A stretch of 64,000 nucleotides of DNA from Octopus sinensis (taxonomy: Eukaryota). Shown here piece by piece: positions 4,000 to 51,794 of this stretch (position 1 is the first letter of the stretch; each line of letters starts with the position of its first letter). The notes under the pieces are model-generated. The model worked only from the letters and a program-made list of their open reading frames with translations, had not been told where the DNA came from and did no database searches. Location: NCBI RefSeq assembly GCF_006345805.1, contig NC_043016.1:27342001-27406000 (forward strand), read 5' to 3'. The position numbers and the translations under genes were made by a program.

Positions 4000-6368
4000 T
4001 TCTTTATTGACCACGCAGGGCTGAACTTAGAAGGGATAAAATACAAACTAGAGCTTGGGGGGGAGGGGGGAGCGAATTCCGATCAAAAGGGATCGTGAAA
4101 AAAAAGAGTGGGGCCGATCAATAGGGATCGTGTATCATAGAAAGTCAATGCAAAAAGGGAAAACAGATTAGGTTTGTCCGTTGATAGAAAAGCCTACGGA
4201 AAAGACTACGGGAACCTTGGGCAATAGTATCATGCAAAAAGAAAACAGATTACAGTAAGTGGCTCTCTTTTTTCCTTTCGTTTTGTTTTTTTCTTTTGGT
4301 CCATAGGATTATGCTCAAACTGCCTCCGTCATTCTCACGTACCATTCTTGCTACATTCACCCATCTTTTTTGAAGCATTCACTAGACAAAACTTCCCTCT
4401 CTACTCTCACCTTCCTCTTCAATTGATACTTGAAGAAGTTGATGAGAGATTGACCAGAGAGAAAAGTGTTTGTCTTTAGGCCTTTCAGACGCGTCCATCA
4501 TATACATTCTTTCGTCATAGCCACAAGTACGATGAAAAAGCTCTTTCAAGGAAGGAGGCGCGACAAAATTCACGAAAGACTCGGTTGATAAACTGACTTG
4601 TCCCACACGCGATAGCAGTCGTTCGACATAGGCCTACAGGTCGGAAATGGTTGGACACTGTACGTGTGCATGCAGGACGGTTTCGTCGCTCTGACCGCAT
4701 CTCGGACAGGTCGGCCCCGTGTTTCTCGAGCCATATCTGTAGAGCTTATCCCGAATGGGTAGCGCTTCTCGATAGCACTGACAGGCCAGGGATCTCTGGA
4801 AGTTGTCCATAGGTCCCGGCCCGAAAGTTGTCTTGAACAAGCGGGTCAGGTATTCCTCATCGACGTCCAGGTTCGCCCGGAGATCGTCAACGTACCTCCC
4901 CTCCAATAATCTCCTATAGAATGCTTTGGTTGTGTTGAAGTCGCTCAAGGTCGACCCGGGACGGCATAGTTGCTTGAGAGCAACGCGATACTCGCGGTGC
5001 CATTCGCCCTTCCTCGGCCTCTTTTTGATCCACGACTGCAGTTCGGTCATGGCGACGAGCTGCGGGAAAGTGTGCTTCACAAACGGCGACCATACCTGTT
5101 CACCGTCGTCTGCGTAGAGTTGGAGATGTCGCAGTTTCAGCGCGTGTCTGTGCATCATCAACTACGGCATGCTCAGCCCTCCTTTTAACGGGTATTGACA
5201 GCAAATGGATCACCTGACCATTGGAACGCATCCTTTCCACAAGAAGCGGAAGAGAATGCGTTCTAGTTTGGTGATGGTAGGGCGGTCAGGTGGTAGTAAA
5301 TGACGGACGCGATGTACGTGTTCGCAACCTTTGCTCGACCTTTTAGGGACAGCTTCCTCTCGGCCCATTGCCGGACGAGAGTGACCACTCTACTCGTTAT
5401 CTCGTCCCAGTTCTTCTCCATTTGGCGGTCCGGACCAAACCAGACCCCGAGCAACTCGACCGGACTGTCGGTCCAGCGTCCCACGACGGAGGCACCGGTG
5501 GACGGCATGGGCTTGCTTCTCCAGGTGCTGAGTCGCAAGCCTACTGACTTTTCCCGGTTGATTTTTGCTCCTGTTACTGTTTCGTAGTCTTTCAGTGTCT
5601 CGCCGACCAGCTTGATGTACGTTTGGTTAGATACTACGACGGTGACGTCGTCCGTGTATGCAGACACGCTCGTCCCGCAACCCAATTCTTGCGGGATGCC
5701 CCTGAAAGTCGCCAGCTTCCGCAGTAGTGGCTTGAGAGTCAATACGTACAGAAGCGACGAGAGTGAGCATCCCTGACGGACCGAACATGCAATGTCTAAA
5801 AGTCTCGATAGATGTCCATTTACGCGAATTACCGAACGGATGCCTCTGTACAAAGCAGCTATCCAGCCGCGGAAGACGGGACCGAAACCGGCCACTATGA
5901 GGACAGCCTCCAAGTATCGATGGTCTACCCTATCGAAAGCTTTCGATTGATCCAAATTGATCAGAGCCCCATCCATGCCAGGTTCCTTAACTACCCAGTC
6001 TATGATGTTGCGCATCAGATGGAGGTTGTCATGGATGCTCCGGCCCGGCACGGCGCACGTTTGCGCCTTGTCGACCAGTTTCTTGACAAGCGCCAATCTC
6101 TTGGCCAAAATTTTCAAGTCTGCATTGAGCAGAGTGATGGGCCTAAAGTTATCTATTACGCCCCGCCCCCTTGTTTGGATCTTTCTTCAGCAGCGTTACG
6201 GCTCCTCGACTCACAAAACCGGGGATGCTCCCACTTTGCTGCCAAGACGTCTTCAAACAAGGCTGGCATACAACTGTAAAGCTCGTAGGGTAGACCATCC
6301 AAACCCGGCGATTTGTCCCTCGAGCATTCTGCTATCGCGTCCCGCACTTCCGCTGCCGTTATGGCACA
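3997..6368 (-). mobile_element. 5'-truncated Tx1/L1-clade LINE flanked by (ATCT)n on both sides
   Basis: KSPGLDGLPYELY, LDQSKAFDRVDH, SVRQGCSLS, AYTDDV and C-terminal CPRCGQSDETVLHAHVQCP zinc knuckle. 3' end GTGGTCAATAAAGAAATCT followed by (ATCT)n. Confidence 0.9.
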
Positions 6369-7074: not shown

Positions 7075-7120
7075 AATCACGTGACAACCGATGTCAATTG
7101 CGTAGCAGGAAAATGGCGGC
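7075..7120 (+). promoter_or_regulatory. Candidate core promoter/5' end: E-box TCACGTGAC and YY1-type AAAATGGCGGC overlapping the ATG
   Basis: CACGTG at 7078-7083 and AAAATGGCGGC at 7110-7120. Both motifs are typical near housekeeping-gene start sites. Motif match only. Confidence 0.45.
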
Positions 7121-7199
7121 TTCATCCCGTTTGGGGAAGAAGTTAGCTACGAAAACCCGTCTTTCTGCTTCACTGGATCCCAAATTAACCACAGATTCG
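7113..7199 (+). CDS. BAHD1: Putative coding exon 1 ([29 protein letters not shown])
   Basis: AAAATGGCGGC start context, 29 open codons, then TCG|gtaagt consensus donor at 7200 in phase 0, matching the phase-0 acceptor at 33603. The region is locally CpG-rich. Not supported by homology. Confidence 0.65.
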
Positions 7200-28305: not shown

Positions 28306-28338
<33 letters not shown>

Positions 28339-28409
28339 ATATATATATATATATGTTTTTATATATATATATATATATATGTTTTTATATATATATATAT
28401 ATATGTTTT

Positions 28410-28442
<33 letters not shown>

Positions 28443-28456
28443 ATATTATATATATG

Positions 28457-28511
<55 letters not shown>

Positions 28512-31500
28512 ATATATATCAATGATTGTCTGAAATCTCATCCGGAGAGATCCGCACTTGTTGCAAAAGCGTTACAGCGATATGATATGGATGTTGTAGC
28601 GTTAGCCAAAACAAGAATTCATGGAAAGGGGAATTTCTTAGAGAAATCTGCTGGGTATCATTTCTTTTGGAGTGGTAGAGAGGAGACCTATAAGAGAGAA
28701 TCAGGAGTGGGATTTGGTATCAAAACCACACTGGTTTCAAAACTTGAGGAACTACCATGTGATCATTTGGATCGTTTGATGTCTTTAAGACTTCAATTAA
28801 GAAAAGGTCGCTATACAACACTCATAAGTGCATATGCTCCAACTATGAATTCATCAGAGGATGATAAACTTGCCTTCTATCTATTACTTACAGAGATTAT
28901 TTGCAGTATCCCCAATGATGACAAAGTTGTCATTTTAGGTGATTTTAATGCTCATGTTGATCCAGATTCGGAGACTTAGGGTATCTTAGGAAAACATGGG
29001 GTTGGGAGTTCCAACAGTAATGGTTTACTGCAGTTACAAATGTACGTAGAGATGGATTTTTGTGTCATGAATAAAATGTTTCAACTAAAGAATAAGTAGT
29101 AAATGACTTGGATGCACCCTGGTTCTAAGAAATAGCATCTTATAAATTACGTCCTCACCAGGAAAACGAGATACTAGGGACTTTGCTATTGTACGAGTGA
29201 TGCGTGGTGCAGAGTACTGGACTGACCATAGGCTTTTGCGTACCAAGGTGAAAGTTTTTGTCAAGCCTAAGGTTAGAGCAAATAATGACAAGTTACCTAA
29301 ATGGAATGATGTCAATAGACTTAAGATTCCGTCAGTACGCAATGAGTTTGTGAATGAGATAAACAATTTGTCCTGTGATGGAAGGTGGAAGTCATTCAAA
29401 GAAAAAGTATACAAGATTTGTAGTAACATTCTTAGCTTTGTTGTAAAAAAAAAACACCAAGATTGGTTTGATGATAATGATGAAGAAGTTAATCTTATCT
29501 TAGAGAAGTGAAAGGCATTTAACAAGTTTCAACATGTTGACATGTCAATGAACAGGACAGTGGCTACATATTTCAAAGCAGTAAAAGCAACAGTGCAGAA
29601 GAAGCTACGGATGATGCAGGAAAATTGGTGGAGTGGTAGATGCAATGAAATCCAAGTAGCCTCAAATGCTAACAATTCCAAACTTTCTTACTCATCACTT
29701 CGAAGCAAGGATGGCACAGAATTACTAACAAATCCTAAAGATATTGTTGGAAGAGGGAAAGAACATTTTGATGAGTTGCTCAGTAGACCCACTGAAGCTG
29801 ACCTCTCTTTTCTTGATAATATACCTGAGAGACCAATAAAACATCTTATAGCAGAAGTTCCAAACCTGGCTGAAATAAAAGCAGCAATCAGGAAATTGAA
29901 CAATGGAAAGGCCCCTGATATGGATGGACTAGGTGCAGGGATATATATGGTGATCATCTTTGTGCAATATTGATGGATGTGATTCAGAGGGTTTGGCAAA
30001 GTGAAGAGGTTCCGGATTGTTGTGATGCAACTATGGAGATGCTATATAAATCTAAAGGTGGAAAGGATGTCTGTGATAATTATCACGGCATCTGTCTGTT
30101 AGCTGTTGCTGGAAAGGTCCTCTGTAGGGTAATGCTGGATAGATTGCTTCTGCACATTGCTGATGGGGTTCTACCAGAATCACAATGTGGGTTTAGGGAT
30201 AGTAGGAGTACTATGGATATGATATTTTCAGCCAGAGAGTTGCAAGAGAAGTGCATCAAATAGGATATGGACTTATACAAGGTTTTCATTGATGTAACAA
30301 AAGTGTTTGATTCTATCAATAGAATTGCACTTTGGGAGGTCCTGAAAAAGCTAGGATGACCTGAAAAATTTGTGAGAATGCTTAGACAATTTTATGACAA
30401 GATGTAAGTGAGAGTTCATGTTGGAGGTACCTTATCAGATCCAATTTCTGTAGAAAATGGTGTAAAACAAGGTGATATTCCTGTTCTTACACTGTTTGCT
30501 ATATATTTTGCAATAAGTCTTTCAAATAGCTTTTGAAGATTGCCTTAAAGGGGTCTATAAAAGATATAGAACAACAGGAAAACAGTTTAATCTCAAAAGA
30601 CTGTGCTAAAACAAAAGTTTTACATTCTCACCTTGTTGAGTTTCTGTATGCAGATGATTGTGATTTGTTGGCATATTCTCAGAAAGATATGCAGCATATG
30701 GTGAATGTGATTTGTGCAGCATTGGATCTAACAATCAATCTAAAAAAAACTGTTATAATGTACCAACCTGCTCCCTCCAAGATGTATGTGGAACCTTTTA
30801 TAACTGTGCCTAGATTTATTTATTTAGGAAGTACCTTGAGCACTGCTGGTCTTCATGAAATTTCATACAGAATAAGCAGGGCTAGTAGTGCTTTTGGTAG
30901 GCTTGATAGGTGTCTGTGGAAACAGGATAATATATCTTCACAAATTAAAGTTATATAAAGGTATATAACACGTGCGTCCTCCCATCTTTACTATATGGAA
31001 GTGAGGCATGGGTTGTTTACCATAGGCAGGTAAGGCAATTGGAACGATATCATCAATACTGTCTGAGAAAAGTTTGGGGGATAAACTGGAAAATGGTCAT
31101 TAATAATGTGGAGGTGCTTTTGCAAAGATGTTTGAGGTGGGGAGGACATTTGGTAAGGGTGAGTGATGAGCAACTGCCCAAGCAGCTATTGTATGGTGAG
31201 CTGGAAGATGGTAGGAGAGCAGCGCATAAGCCTAAACTAAGGTTTAAAGATTGCCTTAAAAATGCTCTAATACAAACAGGAATTGCAACTGGTAATTGGG
31301 AGAGGGTGGCACAAGACTGTGATGGCTGGAGGAAGATAGTGCATGATGGTTGTTCGAGGTTTGAGAGGGAGAGAGTGAAGTATGAGAGAATTAGGAGGTG
31401 GGACCTGTGGAAAGTGAGACAGTGTTGCTTTTTATGTGTGGGGTTTTGTGGGAGGCCTGGTGAGCTATCAAAAATCTCACAGAAATCGACCCATGATAAA

Positions 31501-32547: not shown

Positions 32548-33214
32548 TATGTTATATATATATATATATAATATGTATATATATATGGTATATATATATA
32601 TATTATATATATGTATATATATATGTATATATATATATATGTATATATATATGTATATATATATATTATATATATGTATATATATATGTATATATATATA
32701 TGTATATACACTTAGGTATATATATATTATATATATATATATATTCTTGTGTATGTGTATTTTGTTTCATATTTATATTTGCATTTTTATATTTTTATAA
32801 TTGTACTTTATAATCTCTGACGAGGCCTTGAGATAGATATATATATATATAAGTAACTCATTTTTAACTACATATTACCTCAATACATCTGACTAATATA
32901 GACAGAATGAAATACCTTTATCTATAGGCTGAAACAGCTGTAAGATCTATTTTGTGTGTATTATTTTTATGGTATTATCTTATTGATGTATATTGTTTTA
33001 TTTTGTTGAATTTGGATGTTCCTATTTATGTAGCTAATAAATAATATGAATTGGTAATATCTGAAAGTCAATGATTGAAATGAATCTGTTCCTCCATTTT
33101 CTTATTTGTATTATGAATTTGAGGTAAAATATTTTACCTTCGCTCATCTAATACAATAAATGAATTAATTGCTTTGCAATTATAAGCATTTATGTATTTG
33201 CCTTGCGTATATAT

Positions 33215-33275
<61 letters not shown>

Positions 33276-36200
33276 TGCGTATGTATATGTGTGTGTATAT
33301 ATATATGAATATGTGTGTGTGTATATGTACTAGGGTTGATTTGTTCAACATAACTTTCAACGCAGCGCCACTGCATGGCTGTAGTCCAATGACTGAAACA
33401 AGTAAAAGAAATATTATTTTTAAAAGATTTTTGTATTAATCAAATTATCAATTTAAAGTTTATAAAATTTAAACAAGTTATTTTTTTTTTAAATGTATTA
33501 ATTAGATTGTTAACCTAAGGAACATGAAAATTATTTAAAGATAGTTTTATTTAAAAACAATTTTTTTATTAATTAAATATTTTGCATTTTTTTTTTTTTA
33601 AGGTTAATGAAACACGGAAATATTCCTGCGAGAAATCGGATTACAAAAGAAAGCACACAATTGGCCGAAGGCGTGCTGTGTCTCGCGTGGTTACATATGA
33701 TGAATCTGTTCCACTCTACGAAGCATTTGTCCGTGCTGCAGAACTACGCGAAAAGAAATCGGAAACAGCCAGAGACAAAAACCATGGCAATGTTTCCACG
33801 CCTTCTATGTCATCCGTCCGAGAAAATGACAAAGGAAGAGAAGACATCAGTGCCACCAGCAGCACCACCCCTGTCATCAATGATAGTACCAAGACCAAAA
33901 AATATCTCCGTAGTGTTAATCACAAGAGTAATACATTACTATCATCAGAGTTGCAACATGGTGTGAAGAAAAGAAAAAATTTGAAGAGATTGCAGTTGAA
34001 AAACGATGCCTTAAAGATGAAAAATCAGAGGAGTGAGGTACAGATAAAAAAGCAAACAGGAAAAGGCCGTCCCAAAAAGTCGGCATCATTGCCTTCATCC
34101 TCCATGCTATCATCAAAACGAACTTCTTCATTAAGAACCAAAAAAACTATTTCAAAATCAAATGTCGATAACTTATTGCGGTTAAACAAAGGTAAAAAAC
34201 TCTCCGTGTGTCTAATACGTTTGAAGCGTGAAGCAAGTTTAAACGCTGCTGCAAAAGTGAATTTGATATATAATGAAAGTTTACAGTCTCCTTCATCAAC
34301 TGTTTTATCATCACCGTCTTCAGCATTTTGTTCTTCACATAGTGGTGGTAGCAAGCAGACAACACAAACACATGCACTTGGATCTAGAACATATAGACAG
34401 ATGAAGAAGAACAAACATAAAATTGTAAATAAAACTAAAAATGCACGAGGTTTGCGTCTGAAACGAGACAGCAGCTTAGCAACAATTAGTTCTCCTGCAA
34501 ATTCTTTAACTCCCTCACCTCGTTCTTCTTCTTCGCGTTCTTCTTGTTCTTCCTCTTCTTTGTGGCAATGCAAATCTGTTGCAGAGATGATTACAGTGAA
34601 GAAGAGAAAACCTGGAAGAAGGAAGCAACATGATACTTCTTCTTCATCCTCATCTTCATTTTCTTCTCCAAATAGAAGTAAAAGACAATTAAAAACAAAA
34701 ACAAAGAAACACAAAGGACCCTCATTGTCTATAGCCAAAAAGTCACTTGAACCAAAAAAATCCAGGCTCAAAAAGTGTCACACAGTTAGATCAACTCGAA
34801 GACAACAACAACAACAACAGCAGCAGCAGCAGCGAAAGAAGAAGAGTAAAGAATTGGAAGAAAGGAAAAAGCATTTAAAATTTTCTCAGACTGAAAATCT
34901 TGTTAAACCTGTGCTGAATCGAAAATTGAAAGAGTGTAATATTCATGAATTAGACTCCTCCTCGTCAAATTTACTGCAGAGTGACAATGCTAAAGGTGTT
35001 GATGTGATTTCGTCTCTCCCAGTTTCAGCATCAAAAAAACGCAACTTAGGGTTTATGTCAGCACAAGAATATTATGTTGGTGCAAGTAATATTAAATCAA
35101 TTCCAGCAATGAAAAAACACAGGAATGAATATCTATCGCCTTCTAAACTCATTCCTAGTAATGCTAAGACAACTTCCTCAATATCAATACCACTATCGGA
35201 GAATCGTAAGTTAAAGTTTCAAACTTCGTTATCATCAACTTGTCGCAGGAGTTGTTATACTTGCCGTTTACAAGCAGGTGTTCGATTGAAAGAGTTTGAA
35301 ACCAGGTGTGAAAAGGCAAATGAAGAGCTGCAGCATGATGCAAATATGAATAAAGCAATTATGAATCATGGTCAATGTGCAAAAGACTGCATCACATGTC
35401 ATCTTGGAGCAGATATGCGGTTAAATGAATATGAATGCGATGAGACAAATTGTAAAATAAACATGAATGACGGAATATACCAAGGAAATGACATATTGTC
35501 TTGTCATTTAAGAGCAGGATTAGAAAAATATCGAGTTGGTTGTGAGGCAGACAGTAGTGGGACGCAGTGTCACAAAAACTGTATCATTTGTCATCATTTC
35601 AGTTCAGGTATGGGTGGTTATCATGTCGGCTGTGAAAATAAAAACATGGAAGGGGAACGAAATCCAAACAATGATGGCATAGCAGTTGTGAATGCGTGTC
35701 GTTTTGTTCAAGCTAACGATGCTCCATCGCCTCTACTGGCACCAACATCAACGCTGCCTTCACATGAAAAAAATTGCAGTGCAGCTTTAGAAAACTCAGT
35801 GACTCTGATGCAGTGTTGTCACCAGCGTCAGCATCATCACCGCCATCATCACCATCTTAACCAACACCCGCATCTATCTCCTTTGGAAAATCCCCAAAAT
35901 TTATTCCGAAATCAGAATCCAGCAGAGAGTAGTAAAAAGCAGCGAACTCTTAAAAAACTGGAGCATAACGAAGCAATTGATGAAGATCTAGATGTTGTCA
36001 CTGTTCCAGATGATAACCCTGCTACGAAGTATTTGAATTTCAATGTAAAAGACAATTATCAATGCCGAGCAATGAGTTGTAATGTTATACAAGAAAAATT
36101 CACTAATGCTAATGAGGAATTAATTAACAAGCGATTAACTAATATTGACATTTCCACTAACGACTCACATGCAGATTGTGAAAATTTAAAAAACATTAAA

Positions 36201-39200
36201 TCTTTGAAATTGCCCAATGATGATGGAATTGATGAAACAATAGATGGATCTGATGTGATTGATGTTGTAGGAGATGAAGATATATCTGCTAGCCCTGATT
36301 ATCGTCAAAATCTGATATCTAATTTTAAATTTGGAGAAACAACACTCGGTAATGACAACCGCCATGACCACCAGCACAAGCATGACGACAATGATGATGG
36401 TAATGATAGTAGCAAACAGTGTAAATCTGTTAATGATTTCAAATTTGAAAAATTAACATTAACGAACAAGCAAAACAAAAAGTTTGGTTTTGGTGTTGCC
36501 GTTGCTGTTTCGTCTGGTTCATCATCATCATCATCATCTTTGTTAGCTAATGAGTTTTCTCGCTCAAATTGTTATCAAAGTTTAAATTCTAACAGAAATG
36601 ACAGCATTAGTAATACTACTAATAATAAAAAAAATCCAGGAAAATCTACTGCGAAATCACTACATTTTACAAATTTACAAGCTCTCAAATCAAATGAAAG
36701 ATTAGATGGCGCTAGTACTGCTGATGCAGTATCAACACCAGCATTGACATCAGCTAAAGATACACATGCTAATTATCCAAATTTAATTATTATTGGAGAT
36801 GATGACAATAAATTAATATATCCTACTAAACGATCAGCAACTGAAGTTGTAGGAGATGTACATCCCAAAAAAAGATGTTATAAGTACACACCACCTTTAG
36901 ATGGTATTGGAAGCAGCCGTTTTCCTTCTAGTACTGCTGGTGCAACAACTACTACTTCATTTGGGCTGTGTAGTAACAAATATTATTATTGTAGTAGTAG
37001 TAGTAGTAATAGTAGTAGTAACGATGGTGGTGTTAGTAATATGAAAAATACTTTTGTAAGTAATAATAATATTAATAGTATTGATAATAACAAGCTTGGT
37101 GGTGTTTGTGCGAAAGAATTGTATTGCTCCAATGAGGAACAGTATATTTGCTATGAAGCTAATTGTCAGAAGCATTCGCCTATGATGGAAAATTCATTAC
37201 GCAAAGTTCCAAAAAGCCTTGCTGATTTAAATATTCCATCTTATGAAACTTGTTCAATGACAACAAAGAGAACAATCACACCAAAGGAACTGAATAAATT
37301 AAAGTTGTCAAGAATTGGTAGTTTACAAGGAAAAACTTGGGGAAAACATACGATGATAGCAAAAGGAATGGTGGAAAGATCGGATAAGTGTAAATTGACT
37401 GAGAAAAGTGCTGGTTTTAATGAAGAAACTTGTGGAAATCATCCAGTGATGGCAAAACGAGTGATAGAGAGATCAGATAAATGTAATTTGTCTGGTAAAG
37501 GTGCTGATTTTCATGGAAAAAATTGGGAAAAGCACAACACAAAGATTGCAAAATTTGTGCCCAGAAAAAGGTCACAAAAAGTTGCTGGTTTTCATGGACA
37601 GAATTGGGAAAAAGATGCAAGGGTTTCAAATTCAGTGTCTGGGAAAACATTTGAGAACATTGCTGGTTTTCATGGAGAAAACTGGGAAAAACATACTGCA
37701 GGGATTTCAAATTTAATGTCTGGGAAAACCCCTGAAAACATTGGTGGATTCCATGGACAAATTTGGGGAAAAGATGCAGTGGTTTCAAATTTGGTGTCTG
37801 GAAAAATATTTGAAAATGTTGCTGGTTTTGATGGAGACAACTGGGAAAAATGCACTACAGGGATTTCAAATTTGGTATCTGGGAAAAGATCAGAGAAAGT
37901 TACAGGTTTCAGTGGACAAACTTGGGAAAAAGATGTTAGGATTTCAAATTTGGCATCTGGGAAAACAAATGAGAATATCTCTGGTAGGTTTCATGGAGAA
38001 GATTGGGAAAAATGCACAACAGGAATTTCAAATTTGATGTCTGGGAAAACCTCCAAAAATATTAGTGATTTTCATGGACAAGATTGGGAAAAAAATGCAG
38101 GGGTCTCAAATTTGGTGCCTGGAAAAGCGTCTGCGAAAATCACTGATTTTGACTCCAAAATATGTGAAAAAAATGCAATGATTACAAACTTGATGTCAAA
38201 GAGAAAGGATGAGTGTAAAGTATCTGAGAAACTCACTAGTTTTGAAGGAGAAATTTGTGGAAAAGACACAGTGGTGGCAAGTTCATCATCAAGAATAGGT
38301 GAATATAAAACAGCTGAGAAATTTGCTAGTTTTGAAGGAGAAATTTGTGGAAAACCTCCGTTGATTTCAAAAGCAATGCCAGAGGGATCGGACAAATTCA
38401 AAATATCTCAAAAAATTGCTAGTTTTGATGGAGAAATTTTTGATAAAAATGCGGTAATGACTAATTTGATGCCAGAGAGATCAGATGGATTTAAAATATC
38501 CAATAAAATCACTAGTTTTGATGGAGAAATCTGTGATAAAAATGCAGTGATGACAACTTTGATGCCAGAGAGATCAGGAGAATTCAAAATATCTGAAAAA
38601 ATTGCTAGTTTTGCTGGACAAACTTGTGATAAAAGTGCAGTGATTTTAAAATCAGTACCAGCATGTTTACCTTCTCCAGAAGCAAAACGGTCCGGAAACA
38701 TTGCTAGTTTTGCTGGACAAACTTGTGATAAAAGTGTGGGTATTTTAAAAGCAATGCCAGCACATAAATCTTCTTCAGAAGCAAAACTATCTGCAGACAT
38801 TACTAGTTTTGACGGACAACCTTGTGATAAAAGTGTGGTGATTTTAAAATCTATACCAGCATGTATGCCTTCTCCAGACGCAAAACTATCTGCAAATATT
38901 GCTAGTTTTGATGGACAAACTTGTGATAATTGTCCAGCGGTTGCAAAATCGCTGTTAGAAAGAAAAGCAGGGAAAATTCAGTTAGCTAGGAAAAACGTTG
39001 CAGCTTTTGATAGACAAAGTTGTGACAAAAAAAAACACCCGGTGATGAGCATGAGAAAATCAGTACCAAAGAAACCAATTGAATGTAAATTTCCAAAAGA
39101 AATTGCTTGTTTTGATGCTACAGAGTGTTGTGAAAGTCATTTTATGATGGAAGAATCACTGCAGCATCATGGTGAATGTAAGGGGTCAAAAAACCTTGGC

Positions 39201-42200
39201 GTTGAGAGAGAAACTTGTGGAAAATCTTTGTTAACAAAAGGGTCACTATTGCATACACCAAGTAAAGTATCTCTGAGAACTGCAAGCCTTTGTACTGATG
39301 TACAGTCTTGTAAACATCACTTAGTGATGGAAGAATTGTCACAGCTTTCTCATGGTAAATCAAGTACATTTAAAGGATCAAAAAGAGTTAGTGCTGAGAG
39401 AGAATCTTGCAGAAAATCTTTGTTAATGAAAGGGTCTCCATCACATAAACCAAGTAAGACGTCTTCAAGAACGTCAAGCCTTAGCCGTGAATTACAATCG
39501 TCGTGTAAAAAACATTCATCTTCAGAGGGATCCCTAGCATATAAAGCACATAAATGTAAGAGTATTGCTGGTGATAATCTTAAAATGCAACCATGTACGA
39601 AACACATGTTGAGAGAAAAGCCACTACGAAAATCTAGTAAATTAACTGAGAAAGCCACAAGACTTGATCTTAAAACAGAATCATGTAGCAAACATATAAT
39701 GCCAAGAGAAGCACCAGTGCGAAAATCAAGTAAACTAACTGAGAAACCTACAGGACTTGATCTTAAAGCACAGATGTGTAGGAAGTTTGCAGTAACAAAG
39801 GAATGTGAGTCATTACCAGTTAAGGCGTCAAAGAGAATAGCTAGTCTTAATGCTCAAGCAATAATGGATCTTTGCCAAGAAACTCGGCAGTCAAGACGAG
39901 ACTTGAACCAAGATAGTCATCGTTCTGCGAGAACTCATTACATATTTAATCCAAGACGGCAATCCTGTCGGTGGGTGAATGGTCTTGGGATGATTTTGAT
40001 GAATAATATGGCAGACGGTGAGGATTTAAGTAATGAAGATGAGGATATATTGAGCCAGAAGATGTTGAGTAGCTGCTCAATGACAGGGCTTGGTGTGAGT
40101 GCCGATGCAACAAAAATAGTCTGTTCGGCCAGTGGTACTAATAGCAACACTATCTGCAGTGGTGTGAAGAACAACAGCAAGAAATTGGCTGCCGCTACAA
40201 AAAATAATAATAACAATAATAATAATAATATTTCTAGAGATGTTGACATGCGAGTGCTCAGTGATATCTCACCCTCTGATGACTGCAGTGTTGATATGCA
40301 AATAAAGAAGCAAAACAGCAGCAGCAGTAGCAATAACAGTAGTAGTGGCACCACCACATGCGACACAGCAACACTGACGACAAAAAACAAAAATTTGAAT
40401 TCAAATTCAGCATCATCACTATCTTCATCATCCTCATCAAAATTTTCAAATGTTAATAACATCGTATCGCATCCTAAAACCACTCCGTCGACAGATTCTA
40501 CAAAAACTACTCACCCTAGTTGTTCTTCACTTCCGTGTATGCTTGGAGCAACGGGAGCTGGGAGGGATAATTCTACTCACAGTCAGTGCCAAGCATTCAC
40601 CTTAACAGGGATTGGAAGTATTACAAATTTCACCAATGTTCCTTATCATCCTCAGACTTATGGAAGAGGGCAATTTTCTGTTCCTTGCAGTCATTATGGT
40701 GAGTTAATGTTTCATTTCTTCATTATGATATGTAATAATAAATTTTTGGACTTTGTAACTCTCTACCAACAAAATATGCAAATATATATACATATATATC
40801 TATGTATGCATACAGAAGAATTTAAGATGGGCTGCCCCTGGGAGCTCGTCTATGCTGATGACATTGTTCTTATAGCTGAATCACTACTAGAACTAGACAA
40901 GATTTCAGGTATGGAAATAAGGCTAGAATCAAAGGGTCTTAGAGTTAATCTAGCAAAAATCAAAGTCTTAGTAAGTAGGAAGGTAGACAAATTACAAATG
41001 CCTTCAAGCATGATATATTACCAACAGTCTCGGTCACCCATCATTACATCTGTGAGGCCCCAGAACTAAAAGGTGCTTTTTACATGCCACTGGCATGGGT
41101 ACCAGTTATGTGGCACTGCTCAATCTGTAGAAAAGGCATAGGTAGAAACGCCATGAGATGTAACCAGTGTAAGCTATGGACACATAAGAGGTGCAGCAAT
41201 ATCAGAGGAAGGTTAACGGGGAAAATAGTTTGTGTGTAGGTGCACAGGTACAATTAACACTAAAAATGTACAGAAAATAGACTCCATCAAAATGCCAGGG
41301 GGAAAAACTTGTAGTAGTTGATAGCTTCCATTACCTAGGTGACCAAGTCAGTAGTGGAGGTGGATGCTCCAAGAGCATAGCTGCTAGAATAAGAATTAGG
41401 CTGGGCAAAGTTCAGAGAGCACCTACCTCTGTTGGTAACAAAGGTCCTCTCCTTCAGAGTTAAAGGCAGATTGTATGATGCCTATGTGTGAACAGCCATG
41501 TGACATCACAGTGAAACATGGGCTGTGACTGCTGAGGACATGTAAAAGCTTAAAAGAAATGAAGCTAGTATACTTTGCTGGATGTGCAATGTCAGTATGT
41601 ATGCACGACAGAGTGTAAGCGTCTTGAGGGAAAAGTTGGATATAAGAGACATCAGGTAGAAGTGCCAACCTCTAATAGTGGAGAGAGCTTGTGGAAGATG
41701 TAGACCTAGGAAAACGTGGGACGGTGTGGTAAAGCATGATCTTCAAACGTTGGGCCACACAGAGGCAATAACAAGTGACCAAGACTGTTGGCGATATGCC
41801 ATGCTTGAGAAGACACGTCAAGCCAAGTGAAATCATAGCCATGGCTGATCCCAGTGTTGTGTAACTGGCATCTGTGACAGTGGCATGTAAAAAGTACCTT
41901 TTGGATATTGGGCAATATGCTGTGCTTCAGAAAACCCATCAAGCTAAGTGAAATCATATTCATGGCCAATGCCAGTGTCACATAATCGGCACCTGTGTCA
42001 CATAAAAAGCACCCTTCAACTATAGGCCGCACGTAAGCAGTGACAAGTGACTCAGACTGTTGGCAGTATACCATGCTTGAGAAGACTGGTCAAGGCAAGT
42101 GAGATCATAGTCATGGCCAATGCTGGTGTTTCAAAACAGGCATGTAAAAAGCACCCACTACACTCTTGGAGTGGTTGGTGTTAGGAAGGGCATCAAGTTG

Positions 42201-45200
42201 TAGAAACCATGCCATATCAGACTGGATCCTGATGCAGCTCTCCAGCTTACCAGTTTTCAGTCAAACCATCCAACCCTTGTCGGCATAGAAAATGGACATT
42301 AAATGATGATGATGGTGTATATATACATATATGTATGTATATATACACACATATTTGCGTGTGTGTGTGTATATATATATATATGATCCAATTCACTTAT
42401 ACCCACTTCACTGTACATTGAAGATATGCCCCAATAAATCTTCACTTTCATCTTTTTTCTTCTGACTTGACAATATTTGTTTCTATTTTACTTTAATCTC
42501 TCATCAACTACCATGAAGCTACCTGCCCCAATATTAAACCTCCTCTCAGTTGATGAGTTTTCATCATACAAGATGAAAACCTATCAACTGAAAGGGGGTT
42601 TAGTATTGAGGCAGGTAGTTTTGTGGTAGTTGGTGAGAGATTAAAATAAAATGTTTTTGTGTGTGTGAGTAGGAGTCCACTAGGGTTCATTTCAGTCCTC
42701 CAAGTTATAACTGAGGAATTCAAGACTGGCTGCCCTTGGGAGCTCCTCTATGCCAATGACTTTGCTCTTATTGCTTAATCACTAGCAGAACCAGAGAAGA
42801 AATTTCAGGTATGGAAGTGCAGACTGGATGCAATGAGTTAATTAGAGTTAATTTTTCAAAGACCAAAGTATTAATAGAAAACAAGCAAATTACAGATCCT
42901 TTCATGGAGATGGCTCTGCTTGATATGTAGAAAAGGTGATGGGAGAAACTCCATAAGGTGTGACCCAGTGCAAGCTATGGACACATAAGAGATGCAGTGA
43001 TATCACCAGAAGACTAACAGAGAATGTAGTCTTTAGATATGGCAGATGTGCAAAATAGAGACTCTGTCAAATGTCAGGGGATATCCTTAGAAGTGGTAGA
43101 CAGTTTCCGTTACTTAGGTGAACAAGTTAATAGTGGAGGAGGTTATTCTGAAAGCACAGTTGCTAAAATAAGAATAAGCTTGGCGAAGTTCTTAATTAGA
43201 TGGATTTTAGGCAATGTGCAACTGGTCCTAGCAGTAGTTCTTTCCATTTGAGAAGAACCAAATCATCTCCAGCTCAATAGGTTGCCTCAGCTTGTTCAGG
43301 TGCTTCTATGGCTTTGTGAAGCAGTTCTCTGTGGTTGTCCTTTGGCTGTCAGAATTTCTCCCTTGCACCTCTTGTATGAGTGGGAGCAAAGGTTCTCATT
43401 CAGGCTCAGCTTCAAGAGGGTGACTCCAACACACATCCATCTTGCCAAAACCCAGATTCCCTTGCTCAGATCTTCCATCGTCTTTAATAAATTCTTTGAT
43501 ATTTTCAAAATTAATTGAAAAAAACAAAAAGTACCATTGTGTTTATTTTGGTACCAAACAACTTTACACAAACCCTAGTTCTATGATACAAACTATGTTT
43601 TAATGTATTAATTTATGTTTTAAACACCAGATTAATTCCTGACAGTTTATAAATTCTTTATAATTTTCAAAAATTGATTGAAAAAATCTGTATTGTATTT
43701 CATCCAAAATATGGTAACAAAAGAATAAAACCCTTTTCATAGCAATCCAACTGAGGACCACCTTTGGTTCTATGACATAAAAGGCAGTGTATTTCAGAAG
43801 AAATATACTAACAAAAGGGTCAAATGAGCATCATATTTCAAAGTCTATTTTTGTAATTAAATATGTTTTTATTTTTCACTGCAGGTTATTATCCAAATGG
43901 GAATTACTGCTCTCATCCTACGCCAATGGTTCCACAGTTGTCAGAACCTTGTGTTCTTAGTCACTCTTTACCAATTCATGTGCCACATGCAGAGGTTAAG
44001 GTGCTTATACACAATCCAATCCCAACACAACCCTTGTACAACATCCAACCAATGATGCAACGATGACAACTGCCGCTGTGAGCAACAACAGTTCTTCTGT
44101 GCAACCACAAAAAGTGCCATCACAGCAACAACGGCGAGGACGCAATGTTGGTGGAGGCACAAAGAAGAAGACATCAAGACTATCGTTGATGCGGTCACCT
44201 ATATCTAAAAGCAAAACTAAAAGTGTTGGTGTAAGACTTGGTGTTGAGAAGAATGAAGGGAAGGATCTCAGAAAATCTGAGACAAAGAAGAAGACCAAAA
44301 TTAATAATAATAATAATAACAATAACAACAACAACAATAATAATAATAACAACAACAACAACAGCAACAACAACAATAATAACAACAATAACAATAATGA
44401 TAAAAATAATAATAATAATAATAATAAGAGAAGCCAGAAAATTTTGAAAAAGGCTGCACCAATGAAAGACAATCTTAAGAAAATAAATCTCTGTGGTTGT
44501 GATATAAAAGAGATTTCCTTGGATAAGAGCGAAAGGTGTTTGATGGTTTCCAAAAGAAAGAAGACTTATTGTGGGTGGTCATGGGAAGGTGTGCCGGAAA
44601 TGAAAGCAATACTTAACGTGGTGAGATTGTTTGCATTTAATTTTTTCCTTTCACATCTTTTGTCTTTTACTCGTTTCAGTCATTGGACTGAAAGGTACCA
44701 CCTTGATTGCTTCAGTTGAACAAATTGCCCTCTGTACTTATGTTATTGCTTTTAAGTCTAGTACTTAATCCATAAGTTGCTATTACAGAACCACTAGACT
44801 ACAAGGATGTAAATAAACCAAAATCAGTTCAGCAGTGTGTGAGAACAAGTACATACTTACACATATGGTAAAATAGAAAAAGAAAGGATACAGTAAATTT
44901 GCTGTAGGGAGTGGAAAATCCAGTGTTTTGGACAGGGATCTTCTTCAGTGAAAAGTGGAAGGAAAGAAATGCAAGTCTTGCCAACACAGACAAACAGCAT
45001 AACCTTTGGATTCTGTCTTATTTTACATATTTGTTTGCATGTGTGTGTGTGTAAGTCATCTAAAAGTCCGTAAGTCAGGAAAAAATGCACTTGTATATCT
45101 GTCAATAGGGTAGGTATATTATCTGAAGTGTACGGTATTATATATCCATTACGGCCGATCTTACAAATCAGTTTCGTGCTAGGGATTCAACAGTGTTATG

Positions 45201-46402: not shown

Positions 46403-49400
46403 CATCATCATCTAGCGTCCGCTTTCCATGCTAGCATGGGTTGGACGGTTCAACTGGGGTTTGTGAAGCCAGAAGGCCGCATCAGGCCCAGTCTGATCTG
46501 GCAGTGTTTCTACGGCTGGATGCCCTTCCTACGCCAACCACTCCGTGAGTGTAGTGGGTGCTTTTTACATATATAAATGTACATGTAAGTGTAAATGTAT
46601 ATATAATGGACTCTCCCATTGAAGACAACGTGTGAGTATTTAGCTTTTTTGCCAAACAACCTGCAAATATGATTTGCTTATAGTGATCAAATATGTACTG
46701 TACATTAGTTCACTCTCTCCATCAAATTGATGTTACCTGAAAAGGTGCACAGTTTGCCATTTGTCAGGTGTTGAAGTGATCACAGAGCAATGTGAGATGA
46801 AGTGTTTTGCTGAAGAACACAACAAACCACCTGGTCTAGGAATTAAACCGTTGTCTCACCCTGACCACCAGGCCATGTTTCCTCACACACGCACACATAT
46901 AATGAAAATAAATAAAACAAAAGAATAGAGATAAATTAATCCAGGCAAATATTTTTTCGAGTAGTCTTTAGTGACGGTTCTTGGTTAACTAGACTGATGA
47001 GTGATAATCATTGTGTAGTTTATAATCCAGCTATTACTATTGTACACATTTGATTAGTAAATCCAAATTTTGTTTTTGACAATTTCAGAGTATAGTATAA
47101 AAGATTGACCAATTTGTTCTTTCATAGTAATGCCTTTTCCTATGAACATTAGTATAAGCAACTTAGCTGACCTAAATAATATAGTTTGGTACTACCTGGA
47201 ATTTATTCATCTTATCCATTTTTATCTAATTTAGTCTGGGTCAGTAAAAGGTTTGACTATGCCTGAAGGTCTTGCAGTACCATGTTCTTATACCACTTCA
47301 ACCTTATTTGATTTACTTTTTATATTGATTATACTTCCCTTCACCCATTGATAGCTTTGGACAGCATTAGGCTGTTTACTACTATAGAAACTCTTACAGT
47401 ATCAAATTTTAATACTACTTCAACCTTTTTAATTTAACTTTTATAATCGATGTTTTTCCGGTCTATGTGATACTGTAGTTATGGATTGATTTAACCCTCT
47501 TGGGACACCCAAACCAATTGATCAGCCCAAGTGATACAAGCTGAAAGGATTTTGAGTTCAATCCATTGGCCCAATAGAACAAATGTTGTGAATGGTTGGT
47601 TTTGGAGTGTAATAGCTAATTAGAGGTAGATGTATCTCAATAGAAAAAAACTTTGATCTTTTTGGCTACACATACCAAAACACCATGTGTCTCAAAAGGT
47701 TAAGTGCAGAATTAACCCAACACTAACTCATCTGAAACATGCATAGACAAATTATGGATCATAAATTATGAAGTAAAAATATATAATTCTTCATTCTTTT
47801 TGTGTTGGAGCTTGCTTCCCAACCACATGGTTCCGGGTCAGTACCACTGTGTGGTACCTTGGGCAAGTGTCTTCTAATATAGCCTCAGGCCAACCAAAGT
47901 CTTGTGAGTGGATTTGGTAGACAGAGCCTGTGTCTTTGTGTCTGTTTGTCCCATCATACCACTGGACAACTGGTGCTGGTGTATTTATGTCCCTATAATT
48001 TAGCAGTTTGGCAAAAGCAACCTATTGAATAAGTACCATGCCTTAAAAAAAAGTAAGTACTGGGGTCTAGGCATTCAACTAAAAATTCTTCAAGGCAAAG
48101 CCCCAGCATGGCCACAGTCTAATGACTAAACAAGTAAAAGATAAAAGATAAAATATATATTCACACATACACACAAGTATTTATGTGTGATTGTATGTGT
48201 ATATTTTATCTTTTACTTGTTTCAGTCATATAAAATTATATGTTTTGTTACATCATCCTATATAGGTCATTTAATACTTGATATTTTGAGAAAGAATTCA
48301 TTTCATGGAATGGAATATAAGATAGAAAATCTATCCAAAATTTCAGAAAAAATGTGTATTTATTGGCAGGCTATTCTGCTCTGCTCTACTAAAATGTGTG
48401 GCTTTATTGCTGCCTTCCTTTTGTTCAAAATGTTGGTACATTTTGAATTAAACAAGATTTCTTTTTGTAATTTATGGACAGTGATGAAAATAATATTGTA
48501 CCATCCTAAATGGGTCATTTAATATTTCAGGAAATGCTTCTCTTTATCAAATATAAGGTAGAAAATCATGTAAGAATTCAGAAGAAAAAAAAGATTTATT
48601 TGTCTAATTTATGCTCTCTTTCTCTTTTGCTCATTTTTCAGACTGTTGATGCTCCACCGGTTGAGCGTAAATGCTACCCGGCCATCAAACATGATGATGG
48701 AGATATTATTCGCGTTAGAGATTGTGTTCTGTTGAAGTCTGGGCCTCGCAAGAAAGATGTACCATTCACAGCAAAAGTAATGGCCTTCTGGGAAAACCCA
48801 CCTGATGGTAAGTGCTGTGTTTTGTGTGTATCTAGGTGGTAGATTTTTTTCTTTTTAGCTTTGAAATATCACAAAATACATGAAAATAGTCTCTTCCACT
48901 TTCTCTTCTTCATCATTTAACATCTATTTTCCATGCTGGCATGGGTTGGATGGTTTGACTGGAACTGGTATGGGCCAAGGGCTGTACCAGGTTCTATTGT
49001 CTTTGGTGGCGTGGGTGTTTTTAACATGGTACCAACACCAGTATCAATTATGGCAGATGAGTCTTCTTTAGTACAGCAATATGCCAGATATCTTGGTCCT
49101 TAGTCATCTTCTTCACTAAACTCAGTGTTTCGAGATTGGCCTTCAATGCTTTGTCTCATGTCTTCCTGGGTCTCTTCTTTTCCGCCTTTTTTCCTTCTTT
49201 CATCCCCTCTTCTTCATCCTTCTCTTTTTCTTCTGTTCCTCCTCTCCATTTTCATGCTTCTTCCTCATTCTCTGCTCTCATCTTCCTCACTTTTGTTCAT
49301 TGCATCTACCCTTCCTTTCATGCCAGCCACTCCAACATGGCTTCCTCAGTCTCTGTGTTTAGCTTTGGCACATCTTTGACAAAGTATTGTCCATCTCTGC

Positions 49401-51755
49401 TTATGATGTCAATGTGGGCACAGGCATGGGTAGTGAGGCTATAGGTGCAGATATGGCTGTGTGGTTAAAAATTTGTTTTCCAATCATGTGATCTTGGGTT
49501 CAGTCCTGTTGCATGATACCTTGGGCGAGTGTCTTCTATTGCAGCCAAAGCTGCAGTAGACCAAAGTTTTGACCAAAGCTGACCAAAGTTTTGCAAGTGG
49601 ATTTAGTAGATAGAGACTGAGAGAAGCCTGTTGAATGTGTGTGTGTGTGTGTATGTTTATACAGAGTGTCTGTAAAGTCTGGACACATAGGCAAAATGTA
49701 TATTTTCAAGAAATACTAATAAAAATGTCCAACATTTTATTCAATTGGAATATTAACAAATAACATATTTGCAATATGGTTTCCTCCATTTGTAATGCAA
49801 AGGTCAATGCACTTTGCAAGATTTACATGAACCCAATACAATAACTCCACACTACCATCAATTTCAGTACAAAGCTATATTTAATCTGTGGAGGTAAAAA
49901 ATATATAAAGATAAAATATATATTTAAAAAATATAGTTAATTGAGTCAAGTACATCAACATCAAAAATCAATGGAAATTGTAGTTGTGATCCCTGTGCCG
50001 ATGGCACGTAAAAAGCACCCACTACACTCATGGAGTGGTTGGCGTTAGGAAGGGCATCCAGCTGTAGAAACATTGCCAGATCAAACTGGGCCTGGTGCAG
50101 CCTTCTGGCTTCCCAGACCCCGGTCGAACTGTCCAACCCATGCTAGCATGGAAAACTGACGTTAAACGATGATGATGATGAGATTTCCTATGTGTCCAGA
50201 CTTTGGGGACACCCTGTATATGTTGTGTGTGTGTGAGTTAATAAAGGAAATAATTAAAATGACATGGAGCAGCATTGGTGTCATCCGAATCTTCCAACCC
50301 TGCACTGGCTGTGTCTTTGTATACTGGCACTCCGTCTGTTACGGTGACGAGGGTTCCAGTTGATCCGGTGAACAGAACAGCTTGCTCGTGAAATTAGTGT
50401 GGAAGTGACTGAGCACTCCACAGACATGCATACCAATAACATAGTCTCAGAGAGATTCAGCGCAACACAGAATGTGACTAGGCTGACTCTTTAAAATACA
50501 AGTGCCTCCAATTTTTGCTAGCTGAATGTACTGGAACAACATGAAATAAAATGTCTTACTCAAGACATAAAGCACTGCTGAGAATCGAACTCACACTCTT
50601 TTGATTGGGAGCGGAATACCTTAACTACTAAGTCACGCCTAGTGATGTTGTACAAAGCTGGCAGGCTGTGTTTTTGAGACTTTCACTACAGCTTATGGCA
50701 CTATGAAAGGTAATTTGTACACAACCTGCCAGCTTTTCACAGCATGATTGACTGATTTTCTGTGTGACATTTCGTGCTTGACTTCCCACAGCTTATGATC
50801 TGCAGTACAATGAAATCACGTGATACAGTAGTGCCATTTGCTTGTGCTGATTAAATTTAGTCAACCAATGTAGAATTTTGTTGCTTTTTAGCATTTGTTT
50901 TCTTCATGAAATGATTTTTTGGTTGTTTACAACATTATAAATAACACATCCAGGTTTTATTTACACACACACACACACACACACTAGCTGAGTATCCCAT
51001 CATTGCTGGGCAGTTTTCATAATAGAATGCCTTTGTGGACTTTTGGAATAGCATGCCCACATAAACTGGATTTTCTGTTTTGGACAGAGATTTTTCAAAT
51101 TTTATTTTTAACCACACTCATGCAAATGATACGGAGTGGTGGGGGGGGGTCTTTAACTGAAGACATGTCATTGATTGGTTAAAATTACCCAAATACGACA
51201 ACTTTAACACAAAATAACTTCTAAAATACAAAATTTTGTCAAAAACGTTAAGAGTAAACTCTATGTGATACATAGTATCCGAAGTTTCAAAGTGTTTAGT
51301 TAAAAAAAAAAATTAATTAAAAAATCTATGCTTGAGATGGAAATGGTCCAAGATTTCTTAACAGAAATTTAGTAGTAGGCTCAGACATGGTTATGTTGTT
51401 AAGAAGCTTATTTTGGAACCACGTGGTTTCAGATTCAGTACCACTGTGCGGCACCTTTGGCAAGCATCTGCTTCCATAACACCCACCTGACCAATGCCAT
51501 TTGAATGAATTTGGTAGATGGAAACCGTGTGGAAGCCTATTGTATGTTTGTACTGTATATTATATATATGTATATGTGTATGTCTCTCCACTGTTTGACA
51601 TCCATTTAAAAGTTCAGCAAAAGAGATTGATAGAATAAATACTAGATTTAAAAAATAAGCAATGGGATTGATTTGGCTCAATCCTCCAAGGCAGTGATCC
51701 AGCATGGCAACAGTCCAATGACTGATGTAACTAAAACATATAAAGTGTGTGTGTG

Positions 51756-51794
<39 letters not shown>

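Follow-up and report, generated by a model that had tools for sequence, protein, structure and literature searches.

A gene in the 64,000-nucleotide stretch of Octopus sinensis DNA analysed here (assembly GCF_006345805.1, contig NC_043016.1, positions 27,342,001-27,406,000 of the forward strand; hereafter the window, within which all coordinates are counted) is, by sequence comparison, the octopus orthologue of BAHD1, and its two conserved ASLNA motifs are separated by 1,869 amino acids within a single uninterrupted exon. The corresponding distance ranges from 58 to 380 residues in 30 homologues (median 139.5), which makes the octopus value about 13 times the median. We consider it probable that the linker of this BAHD1 orthologue has grown through in-frame duplication and slippage and that it serves as a disordered tether.

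The motif pair and its spacing among homologues

The two motifs lie in one frame of the + strand, 5,607 nt (1,869 codons) apart and with 1,864 residues in between:

34194-34277, + strand: motif-1 block of 28 residues, with ASLNA at 34233-34247; profile match, flank identical in the related transcript P0266
34248-39839, + strand: spacer of 1,864 residues (S 13%, K 11%, N 7%)
39831-39881, + strand: motif-2 block of 17 residues, with ASLNA at 39840-39854; followed by the conserved SARTHYIF...QSCRWV..GLG block

The sequence-only reading of this DNA had placed the motifs at this distance in one uninterrupted exon, and both the positions and the stop-free exon (exon 2, 33603-40698) were found as it described them. 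Over the six frames of the 64-kb window the string SLNA is found only three times, two of these occurrences being the present motifs, and motif profiles built from 31 other species match at these two sites only (40.3 bits with an E value of 7.5e-15, and 37.9 bits with 4.5e-14). The motif 2 region (39750-40163) is also recovered by tblastn with two related transcripts, P0266 and P0122, at 47-51% identity. Exon 2 holds no stop in 2,365 codons, against 7.4% per codon expected from the base composition (P ~1e-79), and the other five frames contain 65-291 stops over the same region. The occurrence of the motif pair in one open exon is not due to chance.

Homologues were collected with a chimeric query of 690 residues composed of the conserved pieces, which gave 795 matches when searched with HMMER against 1.84 billion representative proteins. 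A second profile search, with the chimeric query and P0122, added five further proteins, without the NCBI protein of this locus (P0001); the matches of a query consisting of the BAH domain only were all fragments of at most 302 residues. A query with all 2,365 residues of exon 2 matched nothing but P0001 within a limit of 8,000 candidates, which low-complexity words had filled; that these searches brought up no further octopus orthologue therefore carries no weight. For the spacing comparison we used the 30 distinct homologues that have at least two [AS]S[LM][NDT]A motifs together with the BAH cage, and took the distance from the first to the last motif. Representative values, in amino acids, are:

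Tick Ornithodoros: 58
Shark Pristiophorus, BAHD1-like: 91
Lizard Elgaria, BAHD1: 102
Gastropod Batillaria: 112
Coelacanth, BAHD1: 113
Chiton Liolophura: 131
Bivalve Solemya: 138
Nemertean Lineus: 161
Hemichordate Ptychodera: 190
Brachiopod Lingula: 214
Anemone Actinostola: 231
Annelid Owenia, three motifs: 281
Mosquito Sabethes: 294
Cephalopod transcript P0122: 367
Cephalopod transcript P0266: 380
Octopus sinensis, this window: 1,869

The other dimensions of the protein depart less from the family. From motif 2 to the BAH cage we count 586 residues in O. sinensis, inside the range of 191-1,448 seen in the homologues. Orthologues from other molluscs, cephalopods included, have 717-1,394 residues, with the exception of Mytilus (1,983 residues).

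The comparison with other molluscs that the sequence-only reading had called for came out on the side of a lineage-specific spacer: 131 residues in the chiton, 112 in the gastropod, 138 in the bivalve and 367 and 380 in the cephalopod transcripts, against 1,869 here. As far as sampled, the expansion thus appears specific to the octopus lineage, O. sinensis being the sole octopod in the sample. Residues specific to cephalopods link P0122 and P0266 to O. sinensis, to which their BAH domains are 79% (P0122) and 75% (P0266) identical, and the two transcripts have derived states and a deletion of one residue in common. Probably they stem from cephalopods outside the octopus lineage, most likely decapodiforms. 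The cephalopod baseline was probably already a spacer of about 370 residues. Some molluscs have lost motif 2 while keeping motif 1 and the ARTH-type block (Haliotis, Pecten, Argopecten, Dreissena, Mya and Mytilus; P0123, P0134, P0140, P0151, P0176 and P0268). Since Haliotis and several bivalves show motif 1 only, motif 2 is not universal in molluscs.

Conservation from anemone to vertebrates marks the ASLNA motifs as short linear motifs. We found no published account of their function, the literature matches being unrelated uses of the string, and a literature search for BAHD1 in cephalopods found no paper mentioning the protein. A further conserved element precedes the pair in exon 2:

33639-33722, + strand: N-terminal motif of 28 residues, pattern Y-K-x-x-H-x-I-G-x-R ... 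T-Y-x-E (read by eye, unscored)

By eye this pattern, more fully (D)YK.KH.IG.R......TY.ES.P.YE, is also present in P0266, Liolophura (P0267), abalone (P0123), Batillaria (P0173), Owenia (P0144), Lineus (P0168) and Ptychodera (P0145). The YK..H.IG.R..TY.E motif is not described in PMC8096256 or PMC10325919.

Gene identity and the reading frame of exon 3

The gene consists of six exons, all on the same strand:

7113-7199, + strand: exon 1, start codon and 29 residues, donor TCG/GTAAGT; from tblastn of P0001 residues 1-32 and the open frame
33603-40698, + strand: exon 2, 7,096 nt and 2,365 codons, with both ASLNA motifs and the entire spacer; from the splice sites as read and identity to P0001
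43885-44620, + strand: exon 3, frame A 43885-44063 with stop 44064-44066, frame B with donor GTG/GTGAGA
48642-48807, + strand: exon 4, first BAH exon, with ...WENPPDG; its phase 0 start fits the end of exon 3; 75-79% identity to P0122/P0266
52250-52418, + strand: exon 5, BAH core with the cage residues; 83-86% identity to P0122/P0266
53983-54169, + strand: exon 6, C-terminal end of BAH and stop codon (coding to 54166)

The first part of this structure corresponds to NCBI locus LOC115222450 (CM016878.1:27339113-27396066, assembly GCA_006345805.1), whose protein P0001 has 2,454 residues, the name 'uncharacterized protein' and an empty Pfam domain record. The translation of exon 2 equals its residues 30-2395 with 100% identity (tblastn), and the exon is bounded by a polypyrimidine acceptor (tttttaag/GTT at 33603) and a consensus donor (TG/GTGAGT, past 40698). 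Exons 4-6 were located by tblastn with a sequence for the C-terminal region of human BAHD1, which served as a lead only; their splice sites are canonical and their phases fit one another.

The assignment to BAHD1 is carried by these downstream exons together with the order of the conserved blocks. Spliced exons 4-6 match the Pfam BAH domain (PF01426) with 51.7 bits against a cut-off of 30.8, and the octopus protein would end in ...FLKKPA, comparable to the ...ILKNP of its relatives. The best matches of the BAH region are proteins named BAHD1 (200-250 bits, 50-62% identity; paralogues were compared by scores), and its database relatives repeatedly bear the name 'bromo adjacent homology domain-containing 1 protein'. 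Directly before the BAH domain we find a GW-x-W-x-G block (44573-44608), after which exon 3 ends at 44620 in phase 0. All family blocks occur in their usual order, namely YK..H.IG.R..TY.E, ASLNA 1, ASLNA 2 with ARTH, QCQxFTLxGxGS, a 15-residue block, GWSWEG and BAH; the two basic-ASLNA motifs hold their expected N-terminal positions, and their spacing alone is aberrant. The BAHD1 identity that had been proposed from the motif pair is thereby upheld, with the BAH exons downstream and the same pair, 91-113 residues apart, in vertebrate BAHD1.

Exon 5 encodes a tryptophan and a tyrosine that match W667 and Y669, the residues with which human BAHD1 cages trimethylated lysine 27 of histone H3 (H3K27me3; PMC8096256), so binding of this mark is predicted. 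BAHD1 acts as a scaffold that brings MIER-HDAC1/2 deacetylase complexes to silenced chromatin. Residues 525-780 of the human protein associate with MIER1-HDAC1/2 and silence genes, and they suffice for this association together with H3K27me3 binding (PMC10325919; PMC8096256). Its N-terminal region has been characterised as intrinsically disordered and as a surface for protein interactions (PMC10325919). By homology, the octopus protein may likewise read H3K27me3 and recruit MIER-HDAC1/2.

A total length of about 2,800 residues also resembles TNRC18 and BAHCC1, proteins in which a Tudor domain stands next to the C-terminal BAH domain. The octopus BAH region indeed matches the PDB chains of these paralogues as well (BAHCC1 6vil, 46.6 bits; TNRC18 8ds8, 35 bits), and one might therefore see in the gene an invertebrate counterpart of TNRC18/BAHCC1 whose great length is ancestral. 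This is very improbable: BAHD1-named proteins match far better (50-60% identity at the scores given above), the paired ASLNA is common to vertebrate BAHD1, and the short molluscan and cephalopod orthologues, save Mytilus, do not fit an ancestral length of this order. A Tudor domain or other extra domain was not found with Pfam, where the scan of exon 2 gave no match above the cut-off and that of exons 3-6 gave BAH only.

The connection between the N-terminal part and the BAH domain is less straightforward, as it depends on exon 3. Here frame A is open up to the stop at 44064-44066, and frame B is open over 717 nt (44000-44716), so that the two overlap. Frame B encodes a lysine-rich and poly-asparagine stretch, followed by a 23-residue block that ends at 44620, and its donor has phase 0 as needed by exon 4. 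The alignments of P0122 and P0266 to the window follow frame 3 as far as 44036 and frame 2 over 44495-44620, which places the switch within 44037-44063. Both transcripts read this region in one frame, and the frame from the N-terminal motifs to BAH is continuous in them, whereas it is broken at 44037-44063 in the O. sinensis assembly. We infer that the switch represents a one-base assembly error or a polymorphism; one-base indel errors are common in long-read assemblies. A repair by splicing was also considered and rejected. Of the 93 formal GT-AG pairs none resembles a real intron: either the acceptor is purine-rich and of coding type, or the conserved KVLIHNP block would be lost.

Because of this frame switch the NCBI model is truncated, unnamed and devoid of a BAH domain, and no gene is called in the NCBI annotation over the BAH exons (48642-54169, locus L001). 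With the shift bridged (XXXX placed at the junction), the protein would have about 2,804 residues. The heterochromatin reader of about 2,800 residues suggested by the sequence-only reading therefore keeps its length when bridged but not as assembled, where 2,454 residues without BAH are left; a product of this size exists only if the shift is an assembly error.

It might be argued that the gene is truly split or truncated, with a 2,454-residue product and with BAH exons that belong to a separate gene, to an alternative-promoter product or to a decaying remnant. The in-frame stop at which the NCBI model ends, the lack of a called gene on the BAH exons and the lack of a convincing GT-AG pair joining frames A and B all fit this view. 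Nevertheless we regard it as unlikely, given that frame B overlaps frame A, is open throughout and encodes the conserved KRKK..GWSWEG..MK sequence with the donor phase that exon 4 requires. The BAH exons themselves are intact, with conserved cage residues and 75-86% identity to the cephalopod relatives, P0122 and P0266 are single-frame at this point, and a one-base indel is the simpler reading.

Frame B of exon 3 also contains asparagine runs (N20, N11 and N7, at about 44290-44420) between the 15-residue conserved block and GWSWEG. The segment with these runs comprises about 138 residues in O. sinensis against about 43 in P0122 and P0266. As it is longer than in these relatives, growth reaches beyond the inter-motif spacer.

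The raw open reading frame around exon 2 (33582-41069) runs 371 nt beyond the real donor at 40698 because of a reverse-transcriptase remnant in intron 2 (40800-41066, + strand), which is in frame with exon 2, contains YADD and gives a weak RVT_1 match (19.6 bits). The last 89 codons of the raw frame are this fragment and lie outside exon 2. Fragments of retrotransposons of the type without long terminal repeats were seen at 2248-3123 (+), 4637-6117 (-) and 28329-28976 (+), upstream of exon 1 and in the 26-kb intron 1, with RVT_1 (105 and 77 bits), zf-RVT and Exo_endo_phos endonuclease (34 bits) domains. A (TA)50 microsatellite is located at 33208-33306, about 300 nt upstream of the exon 2 acceptor, in a stretch with 21% G+C.

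Anatomy and constraint of the spacer

Two repeated structures stand out within the spacer, besides low-complexity runs (S7, Q10 and S7):

35253-35720 (end approximate), + strand: Cys-rich element in four tandem copies, C-x2-C-[HR]-[LH] ... Y/F-x-x-x-C
37314-39095, + strand: tandem array of 20 diverged units of 26-33 residues with the core [AT]-[SG]-F-x-G-x-x-[W/C]-x-K

The array, of about 594 residues, makes up one third of the spacer, and its units align in register. Repeats were defined with Tandem Repeats Finder and regular expressions, as self-comparison with blastp showed no off-diagonal matches. Tandem Repeats Finder reports periods of 78, 81, 93, 99 and 159 nt over 37331-38929, all multiples of three, with copy-to-copy matches of 70-81% within each array. 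A mis-assembly of the array was considered and is unlikely at this low level of identity between copies. By eye, more degenerate duplications are visible between the array and motif 2. Three copies of the Cys-rich element were found by regular expression (at 35253, 35388 and 35580) and a fourth, partial one of 18 residues was read in the translation; P0122 and P0266 have one copy each against four in O. sinensis. From the spacing of its cysteines and histidines the element might bind metal.

Against P0266 and P0122 only four blocks of the reconstructed protein can be aligned: residues 204-257 (motif 1), 2098-2216 (motif 2 with ARTHYIF...QSCRWV...GLG), 2335-2452 and 2590-2801 (GWSWEG and BAH). 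The spacer interior gives no significant blastp alignment to the 365-380-residue spacers of these transcripts, the only signal being a weak match of the Cys-rich element (E 0.097). Pfam searches of the spacer at E values up to 1 returned one spurious match of 12.9 bits, and PDB searches with the array profile and with the first 1,025 spacer residues found no relative (for the array profile, none below E 0.5). Exon 2 shows no blastn similarity to the rest of the window, so the capture of an interspersed repeat is not indicated. An insertion of about 1,870 residues, as the sequence-only reading had it, holds for the length but not for a single event: the spacer is an already variable linker that grew by internal tandem duplication and low-complexity runs.

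An interior that cannot be aligned to relatives and that lacks a domain or fold could in principle be a retained intron or a set of exitrons, the functional protein having a linker of normal size. We judge this quite improbable, because none of the 1,864 codons is a stop at an expectation of 7.4%, while the other frames contain 65-291 stops. Moreover, a strong codon-position bias in composition runs through the whole spacer, array included (C 15/25/8% and T 22/20/39% at positions 1/2/3), and is absent from the neighbouring intron, which is flat. The repeat periods point in the same direction, as do units that have diverged to a synonymous divergence (dS) of 0.6-0.9 without acquiring any stop. 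Since the spacer is stop-free and codon-structured and its repeats are in frame, long-term translation of at least one major isoform is required.

The dS of about 0.6-0.9 between paralogous units further indicates that the amplification of the array is old. Ratios of nonsynonymous to synonymous divergence (dN/dS, Nei-Gojobori) among the units are 0.56, 0.24, 0.62 and 0.99 in four length classes and 0.70 when pooled. The F, G and K of the core are kept in 17-18 of 19 units, but the codons behind them are conserved too (GGA in 17 of 17, TTT in 16 of 18 and AAA in 16 of 17), so protein-level selection on the core is not demonstrated. Judged from these sequences, the pattern shows strong selection for the open frame and apparently weak selection on the residues. 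The earlier claim that an open frame of this length implies selection can accordingly be retained for the frame, but does not extend to the residues, with a dN/dS of about 0.7 among the units.

A more elaborate role for the array would be that of a functional module of multivalent binding motifs (F-x-G-x-x-W/C-x-K), possibly derived from the motif 2 segment and providing new interaction or condensate capacity. The preservation of the core while the remainder of the units diverges speaks for this, as do the dN/dS values below 1 in three of the four classes (0.24, 0.56 and 0.62). Outside the array, the best matches of a profile of 19 units fall on the N-terminal flank of motif 2 in O. sinensis (39807-39857), P0122 (389-404) and P0266 (614-629), where ...K.SKR[IM]ASLNAQ resembles ...K[IL]S..IASFDGQ of the units. 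This gives a hint that the array may derive from the motif 2 segment. The scores concerned are only -0.3 to -0.9 bits, however, against up to 4.6 bits for shuffled sequences. We also considered the units (KxSxxIASFDGQ) as degenerate copies of motif 2, but motif 1 and 2 profiles from other species match no unit. Given in addition a dN/dS of 0.99 in the fourth class, a pooled value of 0.70, a core conserved at the codon level and the absence of a fold or known family, we consider a functional module possible but unlikely. Rather unlikely, too, is the specific version in which the array and the four-copy Cys-rich element together would form an octopod-specific multivalent or condensate module that alters the reading or compaction of H3K27me3 chromatin and was possibly born from the motif 2 segment.

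Structure prediction for the array with AlphaFold2 yielded no fold of high confidence. The 593-residue array alone gave a mean predicted local distance difference test score (pLDDT) of 42, with periodic strands none of which reaches a pLDDT of 70, and two units with a 10-row in-register repeat alignment gave a mean pLDDT of 50 and a predicted template modelling score of 0.13.

Tolerated growth of a flexible tether, driven by slippage and duplication, is the most economical reading of these observations. Tandem duplication of short in-frame coding units would have produced the 20 units of 26-33 residues and raised the Cys-rich element to four copies, slippage-type low-complexity runs would have added to the length, and further sequence would have joined them, all inside one exon. 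Most likely the inserted material behaves as a disordered tether with a weakly constrained sequence. Its reading frame is strongly constrained, as a stop or frameshift here would cut off the BAH domain downstream. What the sequences show directly is the layout of the gene, its homology, its motif spacing relative to homologues and its open frame; we infer the disorder and the tolerance of linker length in octopus BAHD1. The mechanism is an ordinary one with an extreme outcome, and in this respect size and repeat may be seen as a curiosity.

Several points count against the growth of a tether in an intact BAHD1 protein. Exons 1-3 as assembled end in a stop, in agreement with the shorter NCBI model, and because the assembled frame stops here the continuity to BAH rests on the overlapping open frame, the matching splice phases and the relatives. 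Exon 2 may be partially spliced in O. sinensis transcripts. O. sinensis is the sole octopod compared, and the placement of P0122 and P0266 outside the octopus lineage was judged from shared derived residues alone. The low pLDDT is compatible with disorder but constitutes weak evidence for it, as it was obtained with a single sequence or a very shallow alignment, and the first array model drew periodic beta-strands, albeit at low confidence.

The analysis has consequences for the annotation: LOC115222450 can be renamed from 'uncharacterized protein' to the N-terminal 2,454 residues of octopus BAHD1, whose BAH exons, 4.6-10 kb downstream, were left unannotated owing to a probable one-base assembly error. 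It also brings to light a repeat of 26-33 residues that was previously undescribed. Furthermore, the gene offers a test case from nature for the distance that a disordered chromatin scaffold allows between two conserved short motifs, here 13 times the median with the other blocks unchanged. This spacing is relevant to the question whether the two ASLNA motifs work jointly or each on its own. If the array is common to octopods and constrained, it would represent a lineage-specific elaboration of a Polycomb-linked reader; if it is not shared or constrained, we would be looking at nearly neutral growth of a linker whose frame is kept only to reach the C-terminal domain.

Comparison with known BAHD1 proteins

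Vertebrate BAHD1 (Elgaria XP_062973797.1 = P0191, Latimeria P0198 and Pristiophorus P0203) has the same W/Y cage in its BAH domain as the octopus protein, the same GW-x-W-x-G block and, in unchanged order, the same pair of N-terminal [KR][KR]-x-ASLNA motifs, as well as a ...RILKNP-type end and about 50-55% identity over BAH. The proteins differ in size, with about 780-860 residues and motifs 91-113 residues apart in vertebrates against about 2,800 and 1,869 in octopus, and the sequences between the motifs are unrelated.

The closest likeness is found in the two cephalopod transcripts, P0266 (1,130 residues; Logan SRR27666080, L003, 4.0 kb) and P0122 (922 residues; Logan SRR29271459, L002, 3.7 kb). 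Both have all conserved blocks of the octopus protein, with motif 1, motif 2, the exon-3 region and BAH joined in one frame and with exon boundaries that coincide with those of octopus. The 22 residues flanking motif 1 are identical between P0266 and octopus; motif 2 with ARTHYIF..QSCRWV is 47-51% and BAH 75-79% identical in the two transcripts. Unlike octopus, they have spacers of 380 (P0266) and 367 residues (P0122) and no tandem array.

Among more distant molluscs and other lophotrochozoans, the block order of octopus, including the N-terminal motif and the 15-residue block, is seen in Liolophura (P0267), Batillaria (P0173), Solemya (P0124), Haliotis (P0123), Pecten (P0134), Owenia (P0144) and Lingula (P0181). 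Where two motifs are present the spacers measure 112-214 residues, and Owenia has its three motifs over 281 residues.

Finally, the long BAHD1-like proteins of arthropods (Sabethes cyaneus XP_053691021.1 = P0174, 2,721 residues; P0202, 2,474 residues) match the octopus protein in length, in the motif pair and in the C-terminal BAH domain. As the arthropod proteins exceed 2,400 residues, octopus is not alone in having a disordered BAHD1 homologue of great length. In arthropods, however, the excess is found ahead of motif 1 and in the stretch from motif 2 to BAH (up to 1,448 residues), and the spacer measures 221-294 residues, whereas in octopus it is the two ASLNA motifs themselves that have been moved apart.

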